Below, piece after piece: positions 4,378 through 59,745 of a DNA stretch of 64,000 bases; position 1 is the first letter of the stretch; every line of letters begins with the position of its first letter. Source of the stretch: Histomonas meleagridis 2922-C6/04-290x. Lineage: Eukaryota > Protista > Parabasalia. Made by a program: the position numbers and the translations under genes. Below the pieces are notes generated by a model. The model saw only the letters and a program-made list of their open reading frames with translations. It did no database searches and was not told where the DNA came from. The DNA lies in the NCBI GenBank assembly GCA_020184695.1, contig JAANOX010000075.1, positions 62,001-126,000 of the forward strand. The letters are read 5' to 3'.

Positions 4378-6800
4378 ATGAAGAAGCAAAAACTATTAAA
4401 TGATATCGAAATTCATCAATCAATCATGCAAACCCTCTTTAGGTTGGCTAAAACAAATATTATAGAATCAGCAAATTCAATAATTGACATTTTTGATGAA
4501 AATCATCCTATTTCATTCAATTTTATATTAGCCCAAACAATATATACAATTTCCATGTTCAGAATGAATGACTTTGATATTTATTCAAAATTTTTAAAAC
4601 AAATTGAAATATTTGAAGAAAACAACAAAATTAATTCAAAAATTTTTGATGTATTTGAAGGTATACTTCTTTCTAAATATTCAGAAGAATCAAAGTATAT
4701 TCTTTATTATCTTTTTGAAAATAAATTTCTTCAGAGTCCAAAGGTTGATTATAAAAGAACCAATGGATGTTTTGCACATCACATGACGCAAGAAGAAATT
4801 AATGAATATTATTGCTATGGAATTAAACAGTATATAAAAAAACATTATGAAGAACTTTCAAAGAATGATTGGGAACTTCATAAGAAATATATTGAAGAAG
4901 GACATAATCCAAAATGAAATAACAAAAATAATTCGAGACGATGAAATTGAAAAACTTCAAGAAATATCATCACAAAATGATTTTGATTTTAATCAAATAA
5001 TTGAACCATCAGTTTATGAAAGATGTGATTTTATTAATCAATATCGGATTACATTAATTGAATATGCAGCATTTTTTTCTTCAGTTAAATGTTTTAAATA
5101 TTTACTTATGAATGGTGCAAAAGTGGAAAACACAGGTAAATATGCAGTTGCAGGTGGAAATGAAGAAATTATTCATTTATGTGAACAAAATCATTCATCA
5201 TTTAAAGATGCATATGAAACAGCAATTAAATTTCATTGTAATGATATCTTTAAATATCTTTATGAAAACAAATTAGAAGATATCAAAAATTTGGAATTTT
5301 TAGGAAAGAAATGTATCAAATGGAACAACTATGAACTCTTTACATATTTGCAAAAAGAAGGAATGGAAATTAATGATGATATTATTAATGCAGCTGCAAG
5401 AATTGGAAATAAATATCTCACAAAATATTTTATGAAAGAGCATCACACTCCAAAAGATATTTTAGGTTATTCATCTAAATCAGGAAATATTGAACTTGTA
5501 AAATACATTTTAGATCAAGAAGGAACTGATATTAATGCTGAAGATATTCATTTGTTTTATTTGAAATTTATTTTAATAATTTGATATTTCAAAATAATAT
5601 TTGGAAATTATTTCAAATATTTAATACAGCACTTATGTGGGCATCTGAAAAGGGTTATACAGAAATCGTTAAATTACTTCTTGAACAAGAAGGAATTGAT
5701 ATTAATGCTATAGATATTTTTTTATTTTATTTAAAATTTATTTTATTAATTTAATATTTCAAAATAATATTTGGAAATTATTTAAATTAAATAGTTCAGC
5801 ACTTATTTGTGCATCTTGGAAAAGTCATATAGAAATAGTTAAATTACTTCTTGAACAAAAAGGAATTGATATTAATGTTCAAAATCTTTAGTTGTTTTGT
5901 TTAATATTTGTTTTGATAATTTGGAATTTCAAAATGACATTTGGAAATTATTTAAATTATTTTATACAGCACTTATTTGGGCATCTTCAACTGGTTGTAT
6001 AGAAATCGTTAAATTACTTCTTGAACAAAAAGGAATTGATGTTAATGCTGAAAATATTTATATGTTTTGTTTTTTATTTATTTTAATAATTTTATATTTC
6101 AAAATAATATTTGGAAATTATTTAGAATACTTGAAACAGCACTTATTAAAGCATCTTATGAAGGTTATACAGAAATTGTTAAATTACTTCTTGAACAAGA
6201 AGGAATTGATATTAATTCTAAAGACATGTATTTGTTTTATTTGAAATTTATTTTAATAATTTGATATTTCAAAATAATATTTGGAAATTATTTCAAATAT
6301 TTAATACAGCACTTATGTGGGCATCTGAAAAGGGTTATACAGAAATCGTTAAATTACTTCTTGAACAAGAAGGAATTGATATTAATGCTAAAAATATTTA
6401 TTTGTTTTCTTTAGAATTTATTTTAATAATTTTATATTTCAAAATAATATTTGGAAATTATTTAAAATATTTAATACAGCACTTATATTAGCATCTTATA
6501 ATGGTTTTATAGAAATTGTTAAATTACTTCTTGAACAAAAAGGAATTGATATTAATGCTAAAGATAATCACTTGTTTTGCTTAGAATTTATTTTAATAAT
6601 ATTGGATTTCAAAATATTATTTGGAAATTATTTAAATTCTTTAAAACAGTACTTATGAAAGCATCTTCAAGAGGTCATACTGAAATCGTTAAATTACTTC
6701 TTGAACAAGAAGGAATTGATAGTAATGCTAAAGATATTTATTTGTTTAATTTAGAATTTCTTTGAATAATTTAATGTTTCAAAATAATATTTGGAAATTA
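4378..6800 (+). CDS. DUF3447-type ankyrin gene with 17-nt-insert repeats; one homopolymer frameshift (~4913); broken at ~6800 by a foreign insertion
   Basis: ORFs 4378-4917 and 4847-5584 join after removing one A (GHNP-NEITKIIRDDEIEKL). Followed by 8 repeat units at exact 170-nt spacing. Confidence 0.8.
5521..6800 (+). repeat. Tandem 170-nt unit = 102-nt ankyrin repeat + 4 x 17-nt inserts
   Basis: aggaa(c/t)tgat recurs at 5521, 5691, 5861, 6031, 6201, 6371, 6541, 6711 (period exactly 170). Confidence 0.97.
5546..5622 (+). other. Example set of four 17-nt inserts (5546-5562, 5566-5582, 5586-5602, 5606-5622) flanking single codons GAA, GAT, GGA
   Basis: gat[attcatttgttttattt]gaa[atttattttaataattt]gat[atttcaaaataatattt]gga[aattatttcaaatattt]aat aca gca ctt reads D-E-D-G-N-T-A-L after removal. 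Confidence 0.9.
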
Positions 6801-7298
6801 TAACTATAAGTTTGTGAAGGATACTAAAGAATATATTGAATTAGATGAATTTATTGATGATTTCATTGAATTTATTAAAAAAGAAGCTATTGATAAATAA
6901 GTCAATTCTTCTGAAAACACCTTATATAAGTTTATTTTTGAAAAACAGCTACTGTAGTATTATCTATCATAGAAGTTATTTTTCTATATCTCATAAAAAA
7001 TGCGTATTTGCGTTGTGCGTGGTAAAACCATAGCAATATGAAAGTCCCAAGATATAAGAGGAACCTAGAACATTGATTTTATAAAAATAATCCGTTAAAT
7101 GTTATTATTTTTAAAACGCCTCATTAAAGTATACTATAAAAAAGAGGCCTATGAGATCTCGCTTAAACCCATATATCATCTAAATAAAAGGATAATCTTT
7201 CGAAAAACATTTCATTAAAGAATACTATTGAAAAGAGGGATACGCGGATTTGCGCATCGGTATAAATGAAGGTGTCAGGATCATGTCATCTTAATAAT

Positions 7299-9278
7299 TT
7301 ACTTATGAAAAACAGCTACTGTAGTATCACCTATAATAGAAGTTATCTTTCCAATAATCATACTATTTATTTTTGTTGTTATAACAGTATCATCATCAAT
7401 AATACTACCATCATATATCACAATATCACCAATATTATGAATACTACTATCATCAACTTTAAAATAATAATCACCATGAGTAGCAAAATCTATAGTATTT
7501 TGATCAATAGAAATATCTTGTTTAATAGTATCATCAATTTGTAAAATTTCATTACTTCTATGTATAGCAACACAGATCCCAATAAATTCTTTATAATTAC
7601 CACTACTTTTAACAGATGGTATACAGTTAGTAGAATCTGTTGTAGAAATATATTTATAAGTTCCATTTTCATTAATTAATTTATATACATTACCTGTTAT
7701 AAACACTGGCTTTCCAATAGTAAAATTATCAATATTTTCATTATTTTCAATAGGAGCGTTATGAGTTATTGTTTTATTAATCTGTCCACCACCATTTACT
7801 GAAATATATGCTTTTCTATAATTTGAATCTGATATATGCCAAAACGCTAAATGATCTTCATAAGAAGCTATTCTCCAAGCATATTCACCGGGTGCTTCAT
7901 AAGAATCATTTTGATAAATGAAATCTAACAATCTTCCAGTTCTTAATACAGCATTTCGATAAGGCACTATTTCACTTAGTTTATGAGTGTGTCCATTTAC
8001 TGAGAAAAAACTTACATTAATATAGTTAATAGAATTACAATTTATATTGCCATTATTTCCATTATGACTGATATTACCATCATTATTATTAAGTTTACCA
8101 AAATATAATGTATTACCAGCAGATCTAATCCTCCAATCATAATCACTATTCAAATCATTATTATCATGAAAATCAATACATTCTCCAACTTCCATAACAC
8201 CATTCGTTTTTATAGTAGCTATACAAGGTAACGTTATTGTTGTATTAAAACCTCCACCAGAACTATTAGAAATATAATAATTATTAATTTTTCCGTTGAT
8301 AGTTAAGACATTATTAATAGTGTTGTGAGTTTGATTCAATAAAGAATATTTATTATCATGATTATGTGTATTTAATCAAATATTATCAGTATCAATTCCA
8401 TTAATTGTATCACAAGTGATATTTGTGCAAAATAAATCACAACAGATTATATCACTATTTAACATATTTATATTATCATTAATATCAACTGAATAATTAA
8501 TGTATAAAGTATTGTCATTTCTTGTAATTTTCTCTAATATATTATGTATATCAGTTAAACTTTCATTAGTTGAATAATTATTATGAGTATGATTAATTGA
8601 ATAATATTTATCATCATGATTATGTGTATTTAATGAAATATTATTAGTATCAATTCCATTAATATAATTACAACTTATATTACCGTTTCTAAATATACTT
8701 ACATGATTACCATCACAAGCTTTGAATCTTAAACAAGTATCAATATTGTCATCAGAACCAACATAATGTTCTATTATACTGCAATCATCACCACTCGGTA
8801 ATACACCTATTACCATTTTAATAGAATCTCCTACTTTAGCATCTGATTTATAAATATATAATCCGTCATAAATATTATTAGCACTCACATAGTTTTTACA
8901 TTCAATATTAATATTACGACTTGCTGACATAATTCTACATGAAATGTCATTACTCACTATTATTAAATCTTTCTCATTCTTAGTTTATTCACCAAATTCA
9001 TTATATGATATTCCTGTTGGAGTTTTATTCATATTAATTAAATTATCATTTGTTGAATATTGATCATGTGTATGATTTATTAATGAAAAATTATCAATAG
9101 ATATATTATTAATAGTATCAACTTCTATATTACCATTTACATTTGAATCTTGATTTATACCAGTATATATTTATAACGCTCCTTCTGACGGATCTACTTT
9201 TAATATAAAATTTACATCTGATGGGAAGAATCCTATATATCCAATTCATTGTAGATTTATTATTCAATTAGTATTCAT
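7299..9278 (-). pseudogene. Tail-fiber/spike-like gene, 660 codons in one frame with five premature stops
   Basis: ATG at 9278 is in frame with track ORFs 8376-8957 and 7299-8339. Repeated C.TINGIDT.NI.LNTHNHD.KY units. The motif GVMEVGECIDFH...DYDWRI resembles phage tail-fiber segments. Confidence 0.6.
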
Positions 9279-9578: not shown

Positions 9579-9830
9579 GATATTAATTCTCAATGTAGAA
9601 ATAAAATTATATTTAAAGATAATATTTGGAATTTTTTTAAACTATTTAAAACAGCACTTATGAAAGCATCATATAATGAACCAGATATAATAAAATTACT
9701 TATTCAAAAAGGAGCAAATCTTTAAGCTACAGATATTTATATTTTTTATTTAATATTTATTACATCAATTTGAAAATTCAAAACATTTGAAAATCATCCA
9801 AATCATTTAATCATCTCTTAGCCTATAAAT
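9579..9830 (+). pseudogene. Degenerate distal ankyrin repeats with 17-nt inserts
   Basis: tat[atttaaagataatattt]gga[atttttttaaactattt]aaa aca gca ctt atg aaa gca (Y-G-K-T-A-L-M-K-A). The next repeat has an in-frame TAA. Confidence 0.7.
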
Positions 9831-18498: not shown

Positions 18499-19402
18499 GA
18501 GGCATGGAGCAGGGGGAGTAAAAACTGGTGGAGGAATAGGATACGGTTTTTCATCGTCTTCCGACTGTATTGATTCGGGACAAACATTAATTTTCCAAGA
18601 CGATGCGTTTGTCTAAGAAAGTTTGGAATCGCACATTGTAATATCTAAAAGCGTTAAAGATGTGTTTACTTGATAGTTGTGCATACCATAAAAATAAGGT
18701 TCTCTTTTTTGCTTTGAGGAGACAAACCTCTTTCATTCCTCTAAAAGCTTTAGGAAAACTTGTATATGGCACCGGGCCATGTATATCCCAAACTTGTACT
18801 TTGTTTTATTATTTTTGTTCTAAATTCAGGATGAGTTTCATTTGTCTGCAAGATAGTGTTTAACAGAGCATTTTCCCACATGACGTCATGTGTTATTTTA
18901 TATCACTCAATTTTACAAAAAAATACCTTACAATTCATATTGACTAAATTTTTGAGAAAATCATTATTTTAATTTCAGATTATAAAAATGTATAATTTTT
19001 TAATTTAAACAAAACTTTAAATTTTATTATAGATTTATTCTCTAAGGTATAAATATGTATGTGTATATACAAAATTTTACTTTTCCCTTTGGATCAAATT
19101 TTCGATTTTGAAAAATTTGATAACTTTAAAATGAATGGATCTCCCAAGACCCATGGAAAAACATCGATGTTTTTGAGTGTGATTATATGATTTATTAATC
19201 TAATGATAATTGATTTCTTTTCTTTTTGTCTATATAAATATCGTCATTTTTATGTCGAAAATGATAAGGTAATTATTTGTCCGTTATGGTATTTTAATTT
19301 TAAGTGTGCTAACACATTTTTTTCGTTTGGAAAATTTTACTTTATTTTTGCCATGATCCAAAAATTAACGGTTTTTTCATTTTTTTTCTTTCGGATTTTT
19401 TC

Positions 19403-22400
19403 ATGGAAACAAGTTCAAGTGATCAAAATATTATTGCGCAAATATTAACAGACCTCAAGCATATAATTTTTAATTTGACTGAAAAAAATTTTGATTTATC
19501 TATACAACAAACAATGAACTTGTTTGATTCAAATTCACCATATTCTTTCGATGTTATAATATGTATTTTTGTTTTATCTGCATTTTCATCACTTAGGAAT
19601 GAAAGCGATATATATATTCGCTATTTACAATCAATCCAATCCAAAGAAGAAGAGCTAAACAAAGATAATCCAAAAATCATCGAAATATTTATTAAATATA
19701 TTGCTCAACTTCAAACACAAGAAGCATATTATTTCCTTGAACAGATGATTACTCATAATTTTGTTGATTCAAGTATTACTAAAAACATGGATACTAATTA
19801 TTTCATACATTATCGCTCAAAAAGTGTAACAGATATTAATAGTGTTTCTTATAAAGATGTTTATGCTTTATCATTTTTAGAAAACTTTTCAAAAATATCA
19901 ATGAATGATTTTGAATTGCATAGGAAATATGTTAAAATAGGACATAATCCAAGTGAAATTGGAGAAATAATTCGAAATGATGAAATAGAAAAACTTCAAG
20001 AATTATCATCACAAGAAGACTTTGATATTAATCAAATAATAGAACCATCACTTTATGAAAGATGTTCATTTATTAATCAAAATAATGTTTCGTTAATTGA
20101 TTATGCAGCATTTTTTTCAGCAGTTAAATGTTTTAAATATTTACTTATGAAAAATGCAAATGTAAATAAAACAGGAAAATATGCAGTTGCAGGTGGAAAT
20201 GATGAAATCATTCATTTATGTGAACAACATCATTCATCATTTGAAGGTGCATATGAAGCAGCAATTAAATTCCACCGAAATGATCTTTTTTATTATATTT
20301 ACGAAAATAATTTAGAAGAATTTGATGGATTTGTTCAACCAAATCCACGAATGAATAGAAATACTGATCAATTTTTACGCTTGATTATGAATAATCATAT
20401 TCATGGAACTAACTTTTTGCAATTAATGGAAAATCTAAATCCTTTGGATAACAATCAAATTCCGCAGAATTTAAATGATAAAATAATTAATAAATTAGTT
20501 GATGAATGTATTCACAATGGAAATTATGAAATCCTCTTATTTTTGGAAGATAAAGAAATAGAAATTAAAGAATCAATTATCAATGAAACAGCAAAATTTG
20601 GTAATTTATATCTTATCAAACATTTCCTTCAAAAAAATACAATACCAAAAAATATTTTGTTGTTTGCAACACAATCAGGAAATAATGAACTTGTACAATT
20701 TATACTTGAACAAAAAGATTTTGAAATTGATTTAAATATAAAAGAAATTTCTTTTATTAATTTGATATTTAATGAAAATATTTGGAAATTATTTAGATCA
20801 TTTAAAACGCCACTTATGATTGCGACTGAAAAAGGTTATGAGAAAATAGTTAAATTACTTCTTGAGCAAAACGGAATTGAAATAAATGTTAAAGATATTT
20901 ATTAATTTAATTTCACATTTTTTTGAATATTTTGATGTTTTGATATATTATTCGGAAACTATTTATATCATTTAATACATTACTAATTAAAGCATCTATA
21001 AAAGGTAATATTGAAATAATTAAAATGCTTCTTGAACAAGAAGGAATTGATATTAATGCCAAAAATGTTAATTTATTATGTTCAATGTTTATGAAAGAAT
21101 TTTGATGTTTTAATAAAATGTTTAAAATTTGTTCAAATTATTTTATACAGCACTTATGAAAGCATCTGAAAATGGGCATATAGAAATAGTTAAATTACTT
21201 CTTAAACAAAATGGAATTGAAATCAATATTAAAAATATTAATTAATTTCATATAAATTTGATTTTATTATTTTGCAATTTCAAAAGAAAATTTGGAAATT
21301 ATTAAAATGATTTGAAACAGCATATATATTGGCAACTAAATGTGGTTATATTGAAATAGCTAAATTACTTCATGAACTTGGAAACAATGATATCAATTTC
21401 AAAACTATTTTATCATTTTAATTGAAGTTTATTTTAATGATTTGGTATTTCAACTGAAATTTTGGAAAAACAACACTTATGTTGGCATCAAGAAATGGAC
21501 ATTTAGATGTAGTTAAATTTCTTCTTAAACAAGGAGGATTTGATATTAATGAAAAAGATGTTCATTAATTTCATTTAAAAATTATTTATTTAATTTGCCA
21601 TTTCAAAATAATATTTGGTGTTTGTTTGGGTTGTTTTGGACAGCACTTATGTTAGCATCAGCTAATGGTCATTATGAAATAGTTAAGTTATTACTTGAAC
21701 AAAAGGGAATTAATATTAATTATCAAGTTTATTTATTTTATTTAATGATAATTTAAAAAATTTTATATTTTATAATAAAAAATGGAATTTATTTTAAATA
21801 TTTGAAACAGCACTTATAGAGGCAGTAAAATGTAATAGCAGTGATATTGTTAAATTACTTCTTAAACAAGAAGGAATTGATATTAATGCTAAAGATGTTT
21901 ATCTGCTTTATTTATTATTTATTTCAATAATTTTATGTTTCAAAATGATATTTGGAATATAATAAAAAAATTTATTACAGCACTTATGATAGCATCTAAA
22001 AAAGGATTTTTAGATATTGTTAAAATGCTTATTGAACAAAAAGGAATTAATGTTAATGATAAAGATATTTATGGTATTTTCATAATTTATTTAATACTGC
22101 ATTTTTATATTCATGTGGAAATGGCCACACGGAAATAGTGAAATTACTTCTTCAACAAAAAGGAACTAATGTAAATGATAAAAAAATTTATTTATTTTAT
22201 TTTCTGATATTATAAAATATTATATGGGAATTATTAAAAATATTTTCTACAGCTTTAATGAATGCATCTAAGTTCGGTTATATAGAAATAGTTAAATTAC
22301 TTCTTGAACAAGAAGGAATTAATATTAATGCAAAAAAAATTTATTTGTTAAATTTGATATTTATTATAATAATTTGATATTTTAAAGTAATATTTGGAAA

Positions 22401-23603
22401 TTATTTGAATTGTTTTATTCAGCATTGATATTAGCATCTTTAAATGGTTATGCAGAAATAGTTAAATTACTTCTTGAACAAGAAGGAATTGATATTAATG
22501 CTAAAGAAATTTATTTGTTTTATTTGATATTTATTTTAATAATTTGATATTACAAAATAATATTTGGAAATTATTCAGATTATTTAATACAGCACTTATT
22601 TTGGCATCTCAATGTGGTCATACAGAAATAGTTAAATTACTTCTTGAACAAGAAGGAATTAATATTAATGCTCAAACAGTTTATGTAAATTATTTTATTT
22701 TTGTTTCATTGATATAGTATTTTATTATAATGTTTGGTGTTAATTTAAATTATTTTGGAATACATTAATGTTTGCATGTTCAGCTGGAAATAATGAAATA
22801 GTTGAGTTAATTCTTGAACATAAAGGAATTGATATTAATGCTAAAAATATTATTTTGTTAAATTTAATGTTTATCTTAAAAATTCGAAATTTAAAATATA
22901 TATTTGGAATGTATTTGAATTATTTCAAACAGCATTAATGCTTGCATCATATGCAAATCGTTTGAAAGCAGTTAAATTGCTTCTTGAACAAGAAGGAATT
23001 GATATTAATGCTAAAGATAATATTCGTTTTAAAGACATAATATTTTATAAATGAATTTGATAATTATTTTCATCTTTTGAAACAGCATTTATGATAACAT
23101 CTAAAAATGGTAATATCGATATAATTAAATTACTTCTTGAAAAAGAAGGAATTGATATTAATGCTAAAAACAACAAAGGAATGACAGCAATTTTACTTGC
23201 AGCTGATTTTGGCATGAAAAATATGGTTGATTTTCTTTCTACAATAGAAGGAATCGAATATGATAAAGAAAAAGCAGACAAACTAATTCTCAACCCACAA
23301 CAAAAACATCTTCGCCGTAATCTAAGAAATGTTATTTTCAATAAAGTTGACCATTGTTCAGCTGAACAAACGGGTAGAGATTATCTAAATGATAGAAGTT
23401 ATTTCTTATGCTTAACATGCAAAATTCTTCCTCCTTACTCCATATGTAGAGAATGTGCAAGGGTTTGTCACAAAGGTCATCACATGATGGAAATAGAACT
23501 GACAAATAATCAAGGATTCTTTTGTGATTGTGGTGTTGGCGATTGTGTTTTAGAATGTAAGCTAATGCATACACATAAACACAAAAAGGAAACAGATGAA
23601 TAA
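19403..23603 (+). CDS. DUF3447-type + ~16 ankyrin repeats + C-terminal UBR-type zinc finger; 53 x 17-nt inserts; reconstructed 1,099 aa
   Basis: 4201 nt minus 53x17 (901) = 3300 nt = 1100 codons. Manual translation finds no stop before TAA 23601-23603. C-terminus CSAEQTG...FLCLTC...SICRECARVCHKGH...FFCDCG. Confidence 0.85.
20744..23183 (+). repeat. Ankyrin array with 17-nt inserts; hairpin linkers of 83, 80, 66, 63, 32 and 15 nt
   Basis: 16 linkers counted by hand; each parses as codons plus n x 17 nt (n = 0, 1, 3 or 4). Confidence 0.92.
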
Positions 23604-33526: not shown

Positions 33527-36038
33527 TTATTTTCTTTTTTTCTTAATTATTTCTGCAACTTCTTGTCCATCTTTTCCCAAATTATTTGCATAAAAGAGTG
33601 CGTTTACAAACAAATCAAATAAACACCAAACACATGAACCAAACTAAAACAATACTAATGAAACACTCAACAAAACGAAATAACATTTTTAATATTTATA
33701 TCAATGCCTTCTTGTTCAAGAAGTATCAAAGCAACTTCGGGGTGATAAAATTCCAACGAAACCATTAAAGCTGTAGAAAAACAATTAAATAAATTCCAAA
33801 TATTCAACATAAACCATATTATCTTTCACATTTAATTTAATATCCTTATGTTGCACGAGTTTTTTAACAATATCAATATGACCACCTCTAGCAGCAGATA
33901 TAAGAAAAGCTTCGAATAACATTAAAAAACTCCAAACAAACAATAAAAAACAAGAAAAGAACAAAAACAAACATCAAAAATATTACATAAACATTTCGTT
34001 CATTAACATCAATTCCTTCAATTCCTAAAAGATAATCAATAAGTTCCATGTTATTGAAGCCTATAGACATTGTAAGTGGTTTAAAAAACAATTAAAGAAA
34101 CGTCCAAAAATTATATTAAAATATATAAATAATGAACAAACCTTTGTACATTTTCTCAATACTAAAGCCGTCTTGTTTCATAATGTAACTGAAGAATTCC
34201 GGATTCCCTGAAAATATGACCTCTGTGAGTATCTTTTTCGAGTATGGAACTTTCTCACTAAAACATTTGAACAAAAAGATGTCGCCGCAATTAGCAACTT
34301 CATTAAGAATCTTATCATCAATAAAATCGCCTTTCGTAAGTAGAAATGATAAAAGTTCATAGTTGTTGTAGAAGATGCAGAGAGTTAACAGCTTCTTCAT
34401 GTTGTCGAGTGTGAAATTGTCCTTAATTGGGCTTAGCGAATCTTCCTTATTATTATCGTTTGGTTTTTCGTCTTTTTCGTCATTGTTTTCATTTTCTTTG
34501 TTATCCTCATTCTTTTCATTTTGCTTTTCTACATTTTCTTTGTTGTCGTTTTCGTTTTGTTTTTCATTTTCGATATTTTCGCCTTGTGTTTCTTCTTTTA
34601 CATTTTCCTTGTTATCCTCATTTTGCTTTTCATTTTCTTTATTATTGTTTTCACCATTTTCAGAATCACCTAATAATTCGAACATTGACTTTATATCTCC
34701 GAATAATTTACCGAAGAATGCTCCAGGATTTAGTTCTCCTTCGTCTCCTTCATCTTCATTAGGCTTATCTTTATCATCCTGATGACTTCCGAATAACTTA
34801 CTAAAGAATGTTTCATGATCTCCTTCTTTTTCAGGTTCATTTGTATCATTTTTATTACTTCCGAATAACTTGTTAAAGAACGATTCATATTCTGCTTCAT
34901 CTTTTTCACCTTCATTTTGTGGAGGTTCAAGTTCATTCTTATGACTTCCAAATAATTTACCAAAGAATGACTCATGGTTTGTTTCTTCTTCTACTTTAGG
35001 ATGTTGCTGAAGATTTTGTTGATTTCCTAAATTAGCAAACATTGTTGGGTCAAAACCAGGTAATGCATTTGCTAAAGAGCTCGAAATCTTTGCAAGATTG
35101 TTTTGAATTTGTTGCATGTTATCATCTAATTGAGGTATTCCTTTATTTTCATTTAAGTCTTCGATTTGACTATCGAAAAGATAATGAAATATTTCCTTCC
35201 TATTATATTCGATTGCTTTTTCAAACGCTCCTCTAAATGTCGAATTGTTTTGTTCGCATAAACGAATAATTTCATTGTTTCCTCCTGCAACTGCATATTT
35301 ACCTGCGTTTTCGACTTTCGCTCCATTCATAAGTAAAAACTTAAAACATTTAATAGCGCCTAAAAATGCACAACATTCTATAAGTGTAACATTTGCTTCG
35401 TTAATAATCGAATTCTTCTCATAGAGTGATGGTTCAATGCATTGATTAAAATCAAAGTTTGGTTGAGTGGACATTTCTTGAAGCTTTTGAATGTCATCTT
35501 CACGAAGAACTTTAACAAGCTCTGATGGATTAACGCCTTCGTTTGTTAATTCTTTTTGAAGTTTCCAATCATTAGCTGATAACTTATTATAGTTTTCACG
35601 AAATTCTTGATAAAATGGGAAAAATAAAAGATCTTGATTAGGTCGATATTGTTGGAAATAAAATGTTCGAATCTTTTGAACAAAATCTGTATCGATTAAG
35701 CCTTGTAAAATCATTTTATTAAGTATGTAATATGCTTCTTGCTTCTTAACTTTAGCCAGATAGTTCCTAAAAATTCTTGTTATTTTTGGTACATTTGTTG
35801 AATTATCATTTTTACTTTCGAGTTTTTTTAAATATTCACAAATAATTTCTGGCTTTTTACATTGAGATTTAAATGATGCATATAATAATTTGGAAATAAT
35901 TAAGTTAGAGGTATATGGGAAATTGTAATCAAATAATTCAATTGTTGATTGAACTGATGACTCAACATTACTTTCATCAAAACCAAAAATGATTTTTTGT
36001 ATTGTTAGTAAATTTTGAAGATCGCTTAATGTTTGCAT
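33527..36038 (-). CDS. DUF3447-type ankyrin gene with acidic internal insert and 13 hairpin inserts
   Basis: The track ORF stops at 34116 inside the first insert set. Removing 51+70+34+68 nt gives 763 codons with hairpins KYGF, NDLGE, DNMGS, NSLGV, ending at TAA 33527. Confidence 0.75.
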
Positions 36039-41315: not shown

Positions 41316-44045
41316 TTACTTTTGTTGAGAAAATCCAAAACTCCAACAATTGCCCCATTGCGAATTACCCCAACCACCACCGCCAGACGGAGGTCGACCT
41401 TTGTTGCTTCCAAAAGTACTCCCTGATGCCCAACTATTCATTGGATGCTGGGTAGAAGGAGTAGTTGATGCAGCCCAACCATATAATGATGTTTGAGCAT
41501 TAGTTGAACCCCAAACTCTTGACCCTAATTTACCAAATGAATTTCCTGCTTTCCAAGTGCCACAACCTGTTGATTGATTGTTGACATTTATTACACCCCA
41601 ACAATCTTCTGAAGATTTATTAATAATTGGGCGATAATTTTTACTTATACATGTATCTTCTTCTTTAAGCAAATAAACAATTTGGGAATTTTTATTTTTA
41701 GTTGCATAATTTAGTGCTGTTTTATGTATTTTAAAGGATTACCTAATATCATTATTTAATATTATAAAAATAAAATAAACTACATATAAAATAAAATAAT
41801 ATCTTTAGCATTTTTATCAATTGCTTTTTGTTCAAAAAGTAATATTGCTATATTTCTATGACCTCTATCACAAGTATAAATTAATGCCGTTTTAAACTAG
41901 TACAACAAATATCATAAATTATTTTGAAACACAAAAAAGAATTCTTAGAAGCAAGCCCATAATATGTAAAACTTACATCTTTTGCATTGATATCAATTCC
42001 TTCTTGTTCAAGAAGTAATTTGACTATTTCCATATAACCAAATCTAGATGCAAATATAAGTGCTGTATAATCAAGTTTATATTATTACCAAATACTATTC
42101 CGAAATCTAAAATTAATATAATAAATATTATCTTTAGCATTAACATCAATTCCTTCTTGCCCAAGAAGTAATTTAACTATTTCTACGTGATCATTTTGAG
42201 AAGCCAAAATAAGTGCTGTACTAAATAATTGAAATAATTTTCAAATAATAATTTAAAATATTAAATCATTAAAATATTTATTACTTTTAGTATTGGCATC
42301 AATTCCTTCTTTTGCAAGAAGTAATTTAACTATTTCCGTATGACCATTAAAAGAAGCTAAAATCAGTTCTGTACTAAATAATTGGAATAAATTCCAAAAA
42401 ATATTTTAAAACAATAAATTTTTAAATTATTTATTATTTTTAATATTGGTATCAATTCCTTTTGGTTCAAGAAGTAATTTGACTATTTCTGTATGACCAC
42501 ATCTAGATGCAAACATAATTGTATTCCAATTTTTTTTTAAATAATTCCCAGATAATTATTTGACATACCTTACTGTTGAAATGAATATTACTTGTAGCAT
42601 TAACATCAATTCCTTTTCGTTCTAGTAGTAATTTAACTATTTCCACATGATTATTTTGAGATGCTTAAATAAGTGCTGTTTTAAATATTTTATATAATTT
42701 CCAAATATTACATTTAGACCAAATATTTTAAGATTAAACATTATTATTATAATTAATATTAAATGCATCTAGTTTAAGAATTCTTTGAAAAATATCAATA
42801 TAACCTTTTTCACATGCTAATAGAAGTGATTCATTAAATAATATAAGCCAAAATTCTAATTATTAAATAAACATTCAATATAAAAAATAAATTATATTAT
42901 TAGTACAACTTTCATATTCAAAAATTAAATTAATAAGATCCAAATTTCCATATTGGGTTGCAAATAATAAAGTAATCCAGGAATTGGATTAATCTCAAGA
43001 TAGTAGTTAACAAGAAAGAAATTGCCAACTCTTGCAGATTCATTAATTATTTTATTATTGATTTTCATTCCTTCTCCGATTAAAAAATTAAGAATTTCAA
43101 AATTGTCATAATTAATACAAAATTCTCCAAATTTACTAAGATCAAATGTTTTAGGATTAGAATTATTTTCATAAAGATAACGAAAAACATCATTTCGATG
43201 GAATTTAATCTCTATTTCTAAAGTGCCTATAAAAGATATGTGATTTTGTTCACACGAATGAATGATTTCAAGATTTCCACCTGCAACTGCATATTTACCT
43301 GTATTATTGTAAATAGATTTATTTAATATTAAATATTTAAAACAAATAATTGATTCAAAAAATGCTGCATAATCAACTAATCTAACATTTTCCTTATTAA
43401 TAAATGAACATCTTTCATAAAGTGAAGGCTCAATAGTCTGATTAAAAATAAAATTTATTTGTGATGCTTTTTCGATGAGTTTTTCTATTTCATCATTTCG
43501 AATTATTCTTGCATTTTCATTTGGATTAATCCTTCTTCAACATATTTCTTATGAAGGACCCAATTATTACCTGAAAGTTCTTCATAACTATTTAAAAATA
43601 TATTACAAAATGGATCATTGTTATTTTTTATTTTATTTTGTGAATCAGTTTTATAATATGCAAAATATTTTGATTGAATATTTGTTGTGATATTTGAAAC
43701 AATTAATTTTTTCTTAATCATTTTTTCAAGAAGATAATTCGATTCTTGTGTTTTTTCGTCCGGGGGGCTTTGTGTAAACATTTCAATAAGCTTTAAATTA
43801 GTGAACTCTTTTTCTTTTGTTTGTATTGCTTGTAAATATATAAAATATGTTTCATATTTTTCTTTCATAGAAGCAAAAGCATGTTTAACAAAAGAACAAA
43901 TAATATTATTACATGGATAAATAAAATAAGTATCAAGTAGATTTATTGTTTGTTGAACAGAAAAATTTATATTTTCTTTGTTTATATCAAACACAATTTG
44001 TTCGAGTTGTTGTAGCCCTTGAATTGAGGTGAGTTTATTGGACAC
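41316..44045 (-). pseudogene. DUF3447-type ankyrin gene with 17-nt inserts and Gly/Trp-rich tail; probably inactivated
   Basis: Frameshifts near 43520 and 42970, in-frame TAA near 42666, and a TAG micro-exon near 42100. Eight insert-containing linkers at 41721-42895. Confidence 0.7.
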
Positions 44046-57226: not shown

Positions 57227-59745
57227 ATGAGTTTTCAAAGTTTTTCAAACATGAATGAATTGGAACTTCTCCAAAGAATTCATCAAGTCATCACTAATTT
57301 AAGTAGAGAAAATTTTGCACAATCACTAAGTTCAATACTTGAAACAATTAAATCTCAATATTCATATTCTATTTCCTTAATTATCAGCCAAATTATATCT
57401 TCACCATTTACAATTCTGGAGAAAGATTTTAATTTGTATATTGATTTTATGAGAGAAATTGAAAAATTTGAAGAAATTAATAACATTACACCAACAATAT
57501 TCGAAATATTTAAAGATTTTACTCTAGATGGAGACATACATGACGCAAATTATTTTTTTGGAATCCTATATGAACAAGATTTAATTGATCTTCGCACTAT
57601 TCAAAGTTTAAAATGTCCATATTTTGCCCATTTTATATCAAAAGAATACCTTAAACCAAGTAATAACGTTCCTTTTACTAGTTATATCATTGACAATTAT
57701 GAAGAACTTTCAAAGAATGATTGGGAACTTCATAAAAAATATATTAAAGAAGGACATAATCAGGATGAACTTGCAAAGATAATTCGAAATGATGACATAG
57801 AAAAACTCCAAGAAATGGCTTCACATCCAAATTTTGATTTTGATCAATATATTGAACCATCACTTTATGAAAGATGTGATGTAATAAATAATGAAAACAC
57901 TACACTAATTGATTATGCAGCATTTTTCGGCGCGATTAATTGTTTTAAATATTTGTTAATGAATGGTGCAAATGTTGAAGATACAGGTGGATATGCAATT
58001 TCAGGTGGAAATTTTGAAATTGTTCATTTATGTGAACAGAATCATTCATCTTTTTATGGAGCGTTTGAATCAGCAATTGTATTTAATCGAAATGATATTT
58101 TTTATTATCTATATGAAAATTATTCTAAAGGGAATAAAATTTGTAGACTTAGTAGTCTCGAAGAATTAGGGGTGTATTGTGTTATGTATAACAATTTTGA
58201 AATTTTATCATTTCTAATTGAAAAAGGTATGAAAATTAATGAAAAAATTATTGCTCAAATATTAAAAACGGGAAACTTATTCCTCTTTAAATATTTATGT
58301 AATGAAAATCAATTTCCAAAAGATGTTTTAATTATGGCATCAGAATCAGGAAATGTTGAACTTGTTCAATATATATTACAAATAAAAAACATAGATATAA
58401 ATTATAAAAACATTTTTTTGTTTTATTTAAATTTTGTTTTAATATTTCGATGTTTCTCAATATTATTTGGAAATTATTTAAATTATTTTATACAGCACTT
58501 ATTTATGCATCTAAATTTGGTCATCCAGAATTAGTTAAGTTCCTTCTAAAACAAACTGGAATTGAAATAAATGCTAAAACTATTTCTATATTTAATTTGC
58601 AATTTTATGTAAAATAAATTTCATGTTTCAAAATAATATTTGAAATTTAAATGAACTATTTAATACAGCACTTGCACTTGCATCATATAATAATCATTGC
58701 GAAGTTACTAAATTACTTCTTGAGCAAAAAGGGATTGATGTTAATTGTAAAAATGATATTTCACTTAATATTATGAAATTTCATATTAATATATGGAATT
58801 TATTCAAGTTTTTTGATACGCCAATTAATTTAGCATGTAAAAGAGGTCATATTGATATAGTTAATTTACTTCTGATACAAAAAGGAGTTGATGTAAACCT
58901 GCAAAATATTCGTTTATTTGTATTAAAGTTTATTATTATAATTTTTTATTTGAAAATAATATTTGGAAATTATTTGATTTATTTAATACAGCACTTATAT
59001 GGGCATCATCTAATGGATATTCTGAAATTGTTCAATCTCTTCTTAAATGTGAAAAAATTAATGTTAACATTAAAAGTATTTATATATTTAATATAATATT
59101 TTCTTTACAAATTTTCTATTCATCGAAAATATTTGGGGATTATTACATTTATTATTTACTGCATTATTCGGAGCATCTCAATACGGTCATATAAAGATAG
59201 TGCAATCACTTCTTGAACATGAAGGAATTGATATTAATTCAAAAGATATTTAATTAATTCATTTAATTTTCATGAAATCAATTTGATGTTATTAAATAAT
59301 ATTTGGAAATTATTCAAATTATTTTATACAGCACTCATATTTGCTGCTCAGAAAGGTAACGTAGAAATAGCTCAATTGCTCCTTTCACAAAATGGAATTG
59401 ATATTAATGCTAAAGATATTTGTTTGTTTTATTTAAAATTTCTTTTGAATTTATAATGTCTCTCTATAATATTTGGAAATCTTTTAAATTATTTAACACA
59501 GCTCTTTCTTGGGCTGCTCAAAATGGTCACACTCAATTTGTTAAATTACTTCTTTCGCAAGAGGAAATAAAAACAAATATCAAAAATATTTATTTGCTGG
59601 TTTTAATATTTGTTTTAATATCAAAAAATTTCAAAATAATATTTGGAAATAATTTTTAATACTTCAAACAGCATTTTCACTTGCAACCGAAAATTCACAT
59701 GATGAAATTGCTAGACTGCTCGATGTAACATCTAATCTCTCTTAA
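57227..59745 (+). CDS. DUF3447-type ankyrin gene with 31 hairpin inserts; reconstructed ~663 aa
   Basis: 2519 nt minus 31x17 (527) = 1992 nt = 664 codons, no internal stop by manual translation. Hairpins NKDGY, NDEGD, NKFGN, SNSGF, DNDGY, DKNGN, NNKGQ. Confidence 0.85.

Follow-up and report, generated by a model that had tools for sequence, protein, structure and literature searches.

Ankyrin-repeat genes in a 64,000-nucleotide (nt) stretch of Histomonas meleagridis DNA (the window, to which all positions refer) are interrupted between codons by units of 17 nt, and RNA contigs of one of these genes lack the units that DNA contigs of the same organism retain. The 17-mers are very probably autonomous, ultra-short introns of fixed length and non-canonical sequence, which are removed from the precursor messenger RNA (pre-mRNA), most likely by a modified spliceosome. 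The ankyrin genes of the window are numbered gene 1 to gene 4. A preliminary description of positions 5543–6800, the repeat array of gene 1, had proposed that 17-nt inserts are removed or skipped at the level of RNA, DNA or translation. Removal from RNA is now supported by contigs of gene 2, excision from DNA is argued against, and translational skipping has become unnecessary.

The repeat array of gene 1

A tandem array with a period of 170 nt (7.6 copies) occupies 5516–6801. Each copy consists of a 30-codon ankyrin body (T-A-L...D-I-N-A-x-D) and, downstream of it, an 80-nt stretch that disrupts the reading frame and contains stop codons. The distance from the D or N codon to the T codon is exactly 80 nt in all seven hairpins between 5546 and 6645. 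In every 80-nt gap of the window, 17-mers alternate with triplets in the order 17-3-17-3-17-3-17-3, and the triplets, read with the flanking codons, encode D/N-x-x-G-x-T. The earlier parse of 5543–6800 as a codon followed by 17 nt, four times over, is borne out in all seven hairpins. The peptides read from it (DEDGN, DKNGS, NNGGY, NFYGE, DEDGN, NRYGN and DRWGK) are reproduced exactly. Inserts carry stops in the upstream frame, and each one shifts the frame by 2.

Gene models were obtained as Viterbi paths in which each step either reads a codon or skips 17 nt. The gene 1 path skips 31 17-mers and runs from ATG 4847 to TAA 6898–6900 (508 amino acids, aa). It includes an eighth hairpin (6736–6792) with three 17-mers, which leads in frame into the C-terminal tail. 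The product comprises a DUF3447 domain, eight hairpins between 34-residue ankyrin repeats and a short acidic tail. Pfam matches in the uninterrupted N-terminal part (DUF3447, 7e-13; Ank_2, 2e-11), together with the tandem 34-residue repeats of the conceptually spliced products, place the proteins in the ankyrin/DUF3447 class.

A 179-aa open reading frame (ORF; 4378–4917, + strand, TGA 4915–4917) overlaps the gene 1 ORF (4847–5584) in a different frame. Genes 2 and 3 read through the equivalent ...GHNP-x-E-I-x-x-I-I-R-D-D..., so a 1-nt frame shift is placed in gene 1, in or beside the A run at about 4911–4915. It could be an assembly error or a real mutation, or the gene could start at the internal ATG 4847.

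Absence of the units from RNA

Three public RNA runs and one DNA run of the same organism were compared, as assembled contigs, over 19400–23400. Gene 2, which lies here, was chosen because its repeats have diverged enough to assemble. At three hairpins the RNA contigs show net losses of 51, 51 and 68 nt, that is, 3 × 17, 3 × 17 and 4 × 17 (Table 1). The edges of the RNA pieces coincide with the predicted start of the first and end of the last 17-mer, allowing one ambiguous T. Two hairpins retain five and eight letters instead of six and nine because the final T equals the genomic base before the next exon (21463 and 21636). Spliced pieces from the three runs have zero mismatches and identical junctions. 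In gene 2 (19403–23603), removal is thus precise, and its extent is n × 17. In paralogous RNA contigs, 12 letters separate the D codon from the T codon at every joint checked, typically with GGA and one further codon last.

The DNA contigs, record 20 at the first of these hairpins and record 21 at the other two, follow the window without a break through the inserts at a depth of about 500–600, equal to that of the flanks, and the one listed insert-skipping joint has depth 0 in the DNA run. Removal is assigned to the RNA level because RNA contigs lack the inserts and DNA contigs of the same organism are colinear. A fourth hairpin, with four units (21727–21803, + strand), shows both forms. Here the RNA runs also hold an insert-retaining contig (21697–21833), with depths of 7.3 and 3 (records 4 and 10) vs 38 and 13.3 for the spliced contigs (records 3 and 9). 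The unspliced contig reaches exactly 30 nt beyond the hairpin on each side, as expected of a k=31 assembly bubble (21726/21727 to 21803/21804) in which spliced and unspliced forms coexist. At four gene 2 hairpins, then, the units are present in DNA and precisely absent from transcripts, which is the operational definition of an intron. In gene 1, sampled words of 5543–6800 have a share of 0.42–0.48 in RNA runs and 0.71 in DNA runs, and the fraction of its words that overlap none of the 17-mers is 0.587. These shares give indirect support to insert removal from its transcripts.

Lattices in other ankyrin genes of the window

A hidden Markov model (HMM) built from the seven gene 1 bodies was searched against all six frames. 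It identifies 44 ankyrin bodies, which belong to at least five genes and lie on either strand. Of 37 hairpin gaps, 30 have a length of 12+17n nt (29, 46, 63 and 80 nt for n=1–4), in keeping with the constant insert length reported earlier, and gaps off this series mostly differ by whole codons. Counted case by case, 80 nt occurs 21 times, 63 nt eight times, and 46 and 29 nt once each. An uninterrupted 12-nt hairpin (n=0), read by eye, lies at 23169–23180. Shorter gaps keep the four codons unchanged and contain fewer 17-mers, in any combination of slots, and the x-x-G-x codons are intact at n=1, 2 and 3; D-I-Y-G-[17]-N-T at 22067–22095 illustrates n=1. With the RNA losses of 51, 51 and 68 nt, the 12+17n gaps place the units among ultra-short introns of uniform length, in which length is restricted to one or two values below 20 nt.

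The triplets on the lattice carry a coding signature. All 22 cassettes of a lattice control are stop-free in the register first proposed, and Gly occupies slot 3 in 21 of the 22. Variability is highest in the triplet columns (entropy 1.07 vs 0.71 for the 17-mers), and the third position of the Gly codon varies (GGA, GGT or GGG). Among the remaining offsets of the 20-nt lattice, none combines stop-free triplets, the Gly slot and variable columns. The lattice is more than chance.

In gene 2, 53 skips yield an ORF of 1099 aa from 19403 to TAA 23601–23603, with the C-terminal domain in frame; it is not accidental, because each skip moves the frame by 2. The C-terminus (23280–23603) is rich in Cys and His (...CDCG...C...C...H.H...), is in frame only with all 53 units removed, and looks like a zinc-finger domain in its residue pattern. 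Summed word depth over the DUF3447 core of this gene (19936–20337, + strand) rises by 3–5 orders of magnitude in all RNA and DNA runs; very many near-identical paralogues of the family therefore probably exist. Gene 4 is probably a decaying copy or pseudogene. One body exon is interrupted in frame by TAA (T-A-L-I-stop-A-S), and one micro-exon slot reads TAG; the gene also has an 86-nt gap that starts with GTAAGT.

Table 1. Coordinates of exons, insert cassettes, transcript-supported hairpins and ankyrin genes in the window; n is the number of 17-mers in a hairpin.
Feature	Position	Strand	Details
Gene 1 first long exon	4847..5545	+	ATG, DUF3447, first ankyrin repeats; last codon D = GAT 5543-5545
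Cassette 1	5546..5622	+	17-mers at 5546, 5566, 5586, 5606; DEDGN
Cassette 1 single-codon exons	5563-5565, 5583-5585, 5603-5605	+	GAA, GAT, GGA
93-nt exon	5623..5715	+	fourth hairpin codon and 30-codon ankyrin body (N-TALMWAS...INAID)
Cassette 2	5716..5792	+	four 17-mers, three single-codon exons; D, then KNGS
Cassette 3	5886..5962	+	N, then NGGY
Cassette 4	6056..6132	+	N, then FYGE
Cassette 5	6226..6302	+	D, then EDGN
Cassette 6	6396..6472	+	N, then RYGN
Cassette 7	6566..6642	+	D, then RWGK
Cassette 8	6736..6792	+	17-mers at 6736, 6756, 6776 (position weight matrix, PWM, 15.0, 15.3, 10.5); two single-codon exons
Gene 1 terminal exon	6793..6900	+	GGA, then C-terminal tail, stop TAA 6898-6900
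Gene 2	19403..23603	+	53 17-mers, 20747-23078; hairpins n=0, 1, 3, 4
Gene 2 hairpin, n=3	20747-20803	+	57 nt give 6 letters in RNA, net loss 51; X1 record 2, X4 record 17; predicted GAT GGA
Gene 2 hairpin, n=3	21407-21462 (parse to 21463)	+	56 nt give 5 letters, net loss 51; X1 record 3, X3 record 9; predicted 6
Gene 2 hairpin, n=4	21560-21635 (parse to 21636)	+	76 nt give 8 letters, net loss 68; X1 record 3, X3 record 9; predicted 9
Gene 3	57227..59745	+	about 31 17-mers, 58412-59664; behaves like genes 1 and 2
Gene 4	41801..42826	-	lattice mostly n=3; in-frame stops in body exon and one micro-exon
Short ankyrin array	33685..34031	-	n=2 hairpin, 46-nt gap; D, NMGS, T

Anatomy of the 17-nt unit

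Unit statistics were drawn from 84 units (ends) or 115 units (sliding and composition). The consensus is RTTTA-N8-ATTT, and the composition is 58% T, 34% A and 9% G+C, with C at 4%. Position 1 is A in 75% and G in 19%, and 17-mers that start with G begin GTTT or GTTA. Positions 2–4 are TTT, with A at position 2 mainly in slot 4. Position 5 is mostly A, position 14 is A in 93 of 115 units (81%), and positions 15–17 are TTT. The conserved A14 is a candidate branch-point adenosine. Purines prevail in the flanking triplets (R-R-W).

No conserved secondary structure is predicted: RNAalifold finds zero pairs on the 22 cassettes. A 7-base-pair stem around the Gly codon was considered and rejected, as it shows no covariation. 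Each slot has a consensus of its own. Conservation of the 17-mers between genes is no higher than that of synonymous sites (0.725 vs 0.783), and on this comparison shared ancestry or gene conversion would be enough to explain the slot consensus. A sequence-specific guide RNA, which the slot consensus might suggest, is not needed. The CTAAC branch motif does not occur in the 17-mers, an Rfam scan of the window gives no matches, and outside the ankyrin genes the window has nothing complementary to the inserts.

Models of removal

The favoured model, removal of the 17-mers as introns by a modified spliceosome, can be outlined as follows. (i) Units sit between codons (phase 0) of the ankyrin β-hairpin, with ends RUUUA...AUUU and a U-rich body; single-codon exons arise because up to four units share one hairpin. 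(ii) The machinery would measure length and read short U-rich ends flanked by purine-rich triplets. A distance-measuring machine is suggested by the strict length, the absence of structure and the short end motifs. (iii) A14 may serve as the branch point, and the 3' site may be set by distance. (iv) Each 17-mer appears autonomous, because paralogous hairpins hold 0, 1, 2, 3 or 4 of them in any slot, and the units would be removed one by one. (v) Excision would leave an mRNA for ordinary 34-residue ankyrin repeats with D/N-x-x-G-x-T hairpins. The presence of 0–4 units per hairpin in functional-looking genes would be the expected trace of precise intron loss or gain.

A modified spliceosome is the leading guess for the machinery, because the spliceosome is the only known remover of unstructured 15–18 nt segments from nuclear pre-mRNA. 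The size of the units is within its reach, since Mikrocytos mackini has uniform spliceosomal introns of 16–17 nt (PMC10245619).

Several points weigh against this model. The units do not have GT-AG ends: among 84 units the 5' ends are AT in 46, AA in 17 and GT in 15, and the 3' ends are TT in 73. No hidden canonical registration exists, because 37 of 115 units cannot slide by even one base; the first base of these is A or G and the last is T, so that the non-GT-AG character claimed for the inserts stands. A canonical or AT-AC registration by boundary sliding is accordingly rejected. The trichomonad ACTAACACACAG-type 3' intron motif is absent from the window within one mismatch. We know of no spliceosomal case in which 3-nt exons are flanked on both sides by 17-nt introns. 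The triplets retained in gene 2 RNA are known by the number of letters, not by the letters themselves. The spliced contigs come from gene 2 and paralogues, none from 5543–6800 or the n=1 hairpin. Finally, the runs are labelled 'RNA?', and unspliced or genomic-like contigs are also present in them.

There is real room for different machinery, given the lack of GU-AG ends and of a branch motif and the 3-nt exons. Removal from RNA without a spliceosome is improbable. It would proceed by an endonuclease and ligase, or by another ruler-type or guide-directed activity that recognizes U-rich 17-mers between purine-rich triplets. The non-GT-AG ends, the missing branch motif, the exons of only 3 nt and the strict length of 17 nt all suit such an activity. 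The structural data speak against it: the absence of pairs on the 22 cassettes and of covariation in the 7-base-pair stem leaves no bulge-helix-bulge of the tRNA or archaeal type and no other conserved structure. Nor is a guide demanded, as the 17-mers are not conserved beyond synonymous sites and have no complement in the window outside the ankyrin genes. In a wider formulation, which we consider unlikely, Histomonas and probably its relatives possess RNA excision machinery that does not depend on the canonical GU-AG spliceosome. The candidates are a second, divergent spliceosome that has small nuclear RNAs of its own and a protein endonuclease and ligase of the ruler type; such machinery would cut out precisely 17 nt wherever two codons adjoin and tolerate 3-nt exons.

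Excision from DNA in some nuclei or molecules, with the excised copies alone transcribed, would resemble the elimination of internal sequences in ciliates. The inserts are short, AT-rich and constrained in length, as this requires, and joints in the DNA run were not all counted. DNA contigs nevertheless cross the inserts at flank depth, the listed skipping joint has depth 0, the unspliced form in the RNA runs fits a precursor, and the units lack TA boundaries. Such excision is very improbable.

Least credible of all, to the point of dismissal, is that the genes are decaying pseudogenes or satellite, that the lattice has arisen by chance from an internal 20-nt repeat, and that assembly or reverse transcription has produced the spliced contigs as artefacts: TRF does report weak 20-nt periodicity inside some inserts, some copies have in-frame stops, and several other lattice offsets are stop-free too (because they read T-rich triplets), but removal of 31 and 53 units, each of which shifts the frame, restores ORFs of 508 and 1099 aa, three runs share identical mismatch-free junctions, template switching at the ATTT repeats would leave one copy where both are lost, and the micro-exon triplets vary around a fixed Gly.

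Two further candidates were rejected. A single intron of 68 nt or 77–80 nt per repeat does not account for the 5–8 unalignable letters kept in RNA or for paralogues that differ by multiples of 17. Frameshifting or read-through of the inserts is made unnecessary by the RNA evidence; some inserts are open in the downstream frame, and 63-nt gaps are in frame. Proteins that derive from transcripts and cross the junction were sought with the 167-aa piece that precedes the first insert, and none was found.

Comparison with known introns and inserts

The 17-mers resemble the introns of Mikrocytos, Stentor (15–16 nt) and the Bigelowiella nucleomorph (18 nt and up), which are likewise removed from RNA, extremely short and narrow in length range. 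These introns differ in having GT-AG ends and exons of ordinary size; here the ends are AT, GT or AA...TT, up to four units stand in tandem, and exons measure 3 nt. The units have neither the ends of the U2 type (GT or GC...AG) nor those of the U12 AT-AC type, which has 5' ATATCC and 3' AC where the 17-mers have 5' ATTTA and 3' ATTT. Euglenid nonconventional introns and the non-canonical introns of Fritillaria are nuclear, lack GT-AG ends and are precisely removed. The euglenid introns need base pairing of their ends and are much longer, whereas the 17-mers show no conserved pairing and a fixed length. Short non-coding inserts that are absent from the protein also include the bypassed segment of phage T4 gene 60, the byps of Magnusiomyces mitochondria and the internally eliminated sequences of ciliates. 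Bypass elements stay in the mRNA and ciliate elements leave the DNA; the 17-mers are present in DNA, at flank depth and with ends other than TA, and are missing from the predominant RNA contigs. A passage of PMC12316389 cites 15 nt for introns of Stentor.

Introns of Trichomonas vaginalis are of type A (56–196 nt) or type B (23–25 nt, with a poly-T interior and 5' GT[A/T][C/T]) (PMC12316389). Type B introns are likewise short and T-rich and come from the same eukaryotic group, and the 17-mers that start with G begin GTTT or GTTA. Trichomonas introns are otherwise different: they are GT-AG, carry at the 3' end a CTAAC branch site joined to ACAG, measure at least 23 nt, and number about 60 per genome and at most 1–2 per gene. 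None of these motifs occurs in the 17-mers, which contain 4% C, lie below the 23-nt minimum and reach 53 per gene. Single-codon exons occur among the micro-exons (3–30 nt) of animals and plants (PMC8632122, PMC8831610). Those are isolated between long canonical introns, whereas here three stand in a row, 17 nt apart.

Occurrence beyond the window

The GC content of the window (22–37%) may be set beside the 28.7% published for H. meleagridis (PMC8529796), and chicken gut metagenomes hold traces of the window sequence. An annotated paralogue in H. meleagridis assembly GCA_020186115.1 is 53% identical to the N-terminus of gene 2. In the same assembly, 5 kb of WSYJ01000186.1 (locus L124, 6266–11266) hold 20 ankyrin units with 17-nt lattices and no gene call. 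Gaps there are mostly 80 or 63 nt, and some copies have stops. This stretch adjoins the downstream end of an annotated 421-aa 'caskin' gene, the protein of which leaves the family consensus at its C-terminus just before the repeats.

Two metagenome contigs from ENA encode N-terminal domains 41–44% identical to gene 2 and carry the same 17-3 lattice, with hairpins D, SSGY, T; N, YGGE, T; and D, HDGS, T. The lack of any match above 53% identity hints at a different organism as their source. On contig L121 the first hairpin (1854–1865), uninterrupted and without Gly (V-M-F-E), is followed by one that contains all four units of the lattice. JGI metagenome contigs were scanned with two patterns, the first of which gave 0 matches and the second 120 single matches; the latter are due to chance, since none has ankyrin units. 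In Tritrichomonas foetus (MLAK01000993.1; locus L123, 5480–5700) the annotation divides one DUF3447 ankyrin gene into two adjacent genes, with about 190 nt of T-rich sequence between them where a hairpin is placed. No 17-nt lattice or trichomonad intron motif was recognized in this interruption, which may be of a different kind.

Implications

Full-text searches on 17-nt introns, non-canonical introns in parabasalids and tandem single-codon exons found no account of such a system in the searchable literature (subscription journals not covered), in agreement with the earlier statement that no account of such inserts was known. If the removal is spliceosomal, AU or AA...UU introns without a recognizable branch motif, 3 nt apart, would lie beyond all limits of splice-site identity and minimum exon size known to us. 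If it is not, a new route for the removal of intervening sequences from nuclear mRNA would be at hand. The junctions are invisible to standard aligners and gene finders, and a large ankyrin family of a poultry pathogen is truncated or missing in public annotation. For H. meleagridis, introns are published to occur in about 5% of genes, at most one in each (PMC8529796), a figure that would be far too low. The system lends itself to experiment: its units are short and numerous, and natural presence/absence variants occur at four defined slots.

Other features of the window

A PWM scan of the window's non-ankyrin genes for 17-mers showed no lattice; in AT-rich DNA the matrix has too little specificity. 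The Asn-rich ORFs at 7299–8339 (346 aa) and 8376–8957 (193 aa), both on the - strand, have no Pfam match. At 9600–9800 (+ strand) an isolated, degenerate ankyrin unit with an in-frame stop is flanked on both sides by lattice-like 17-mers and is likely a gene fragment.

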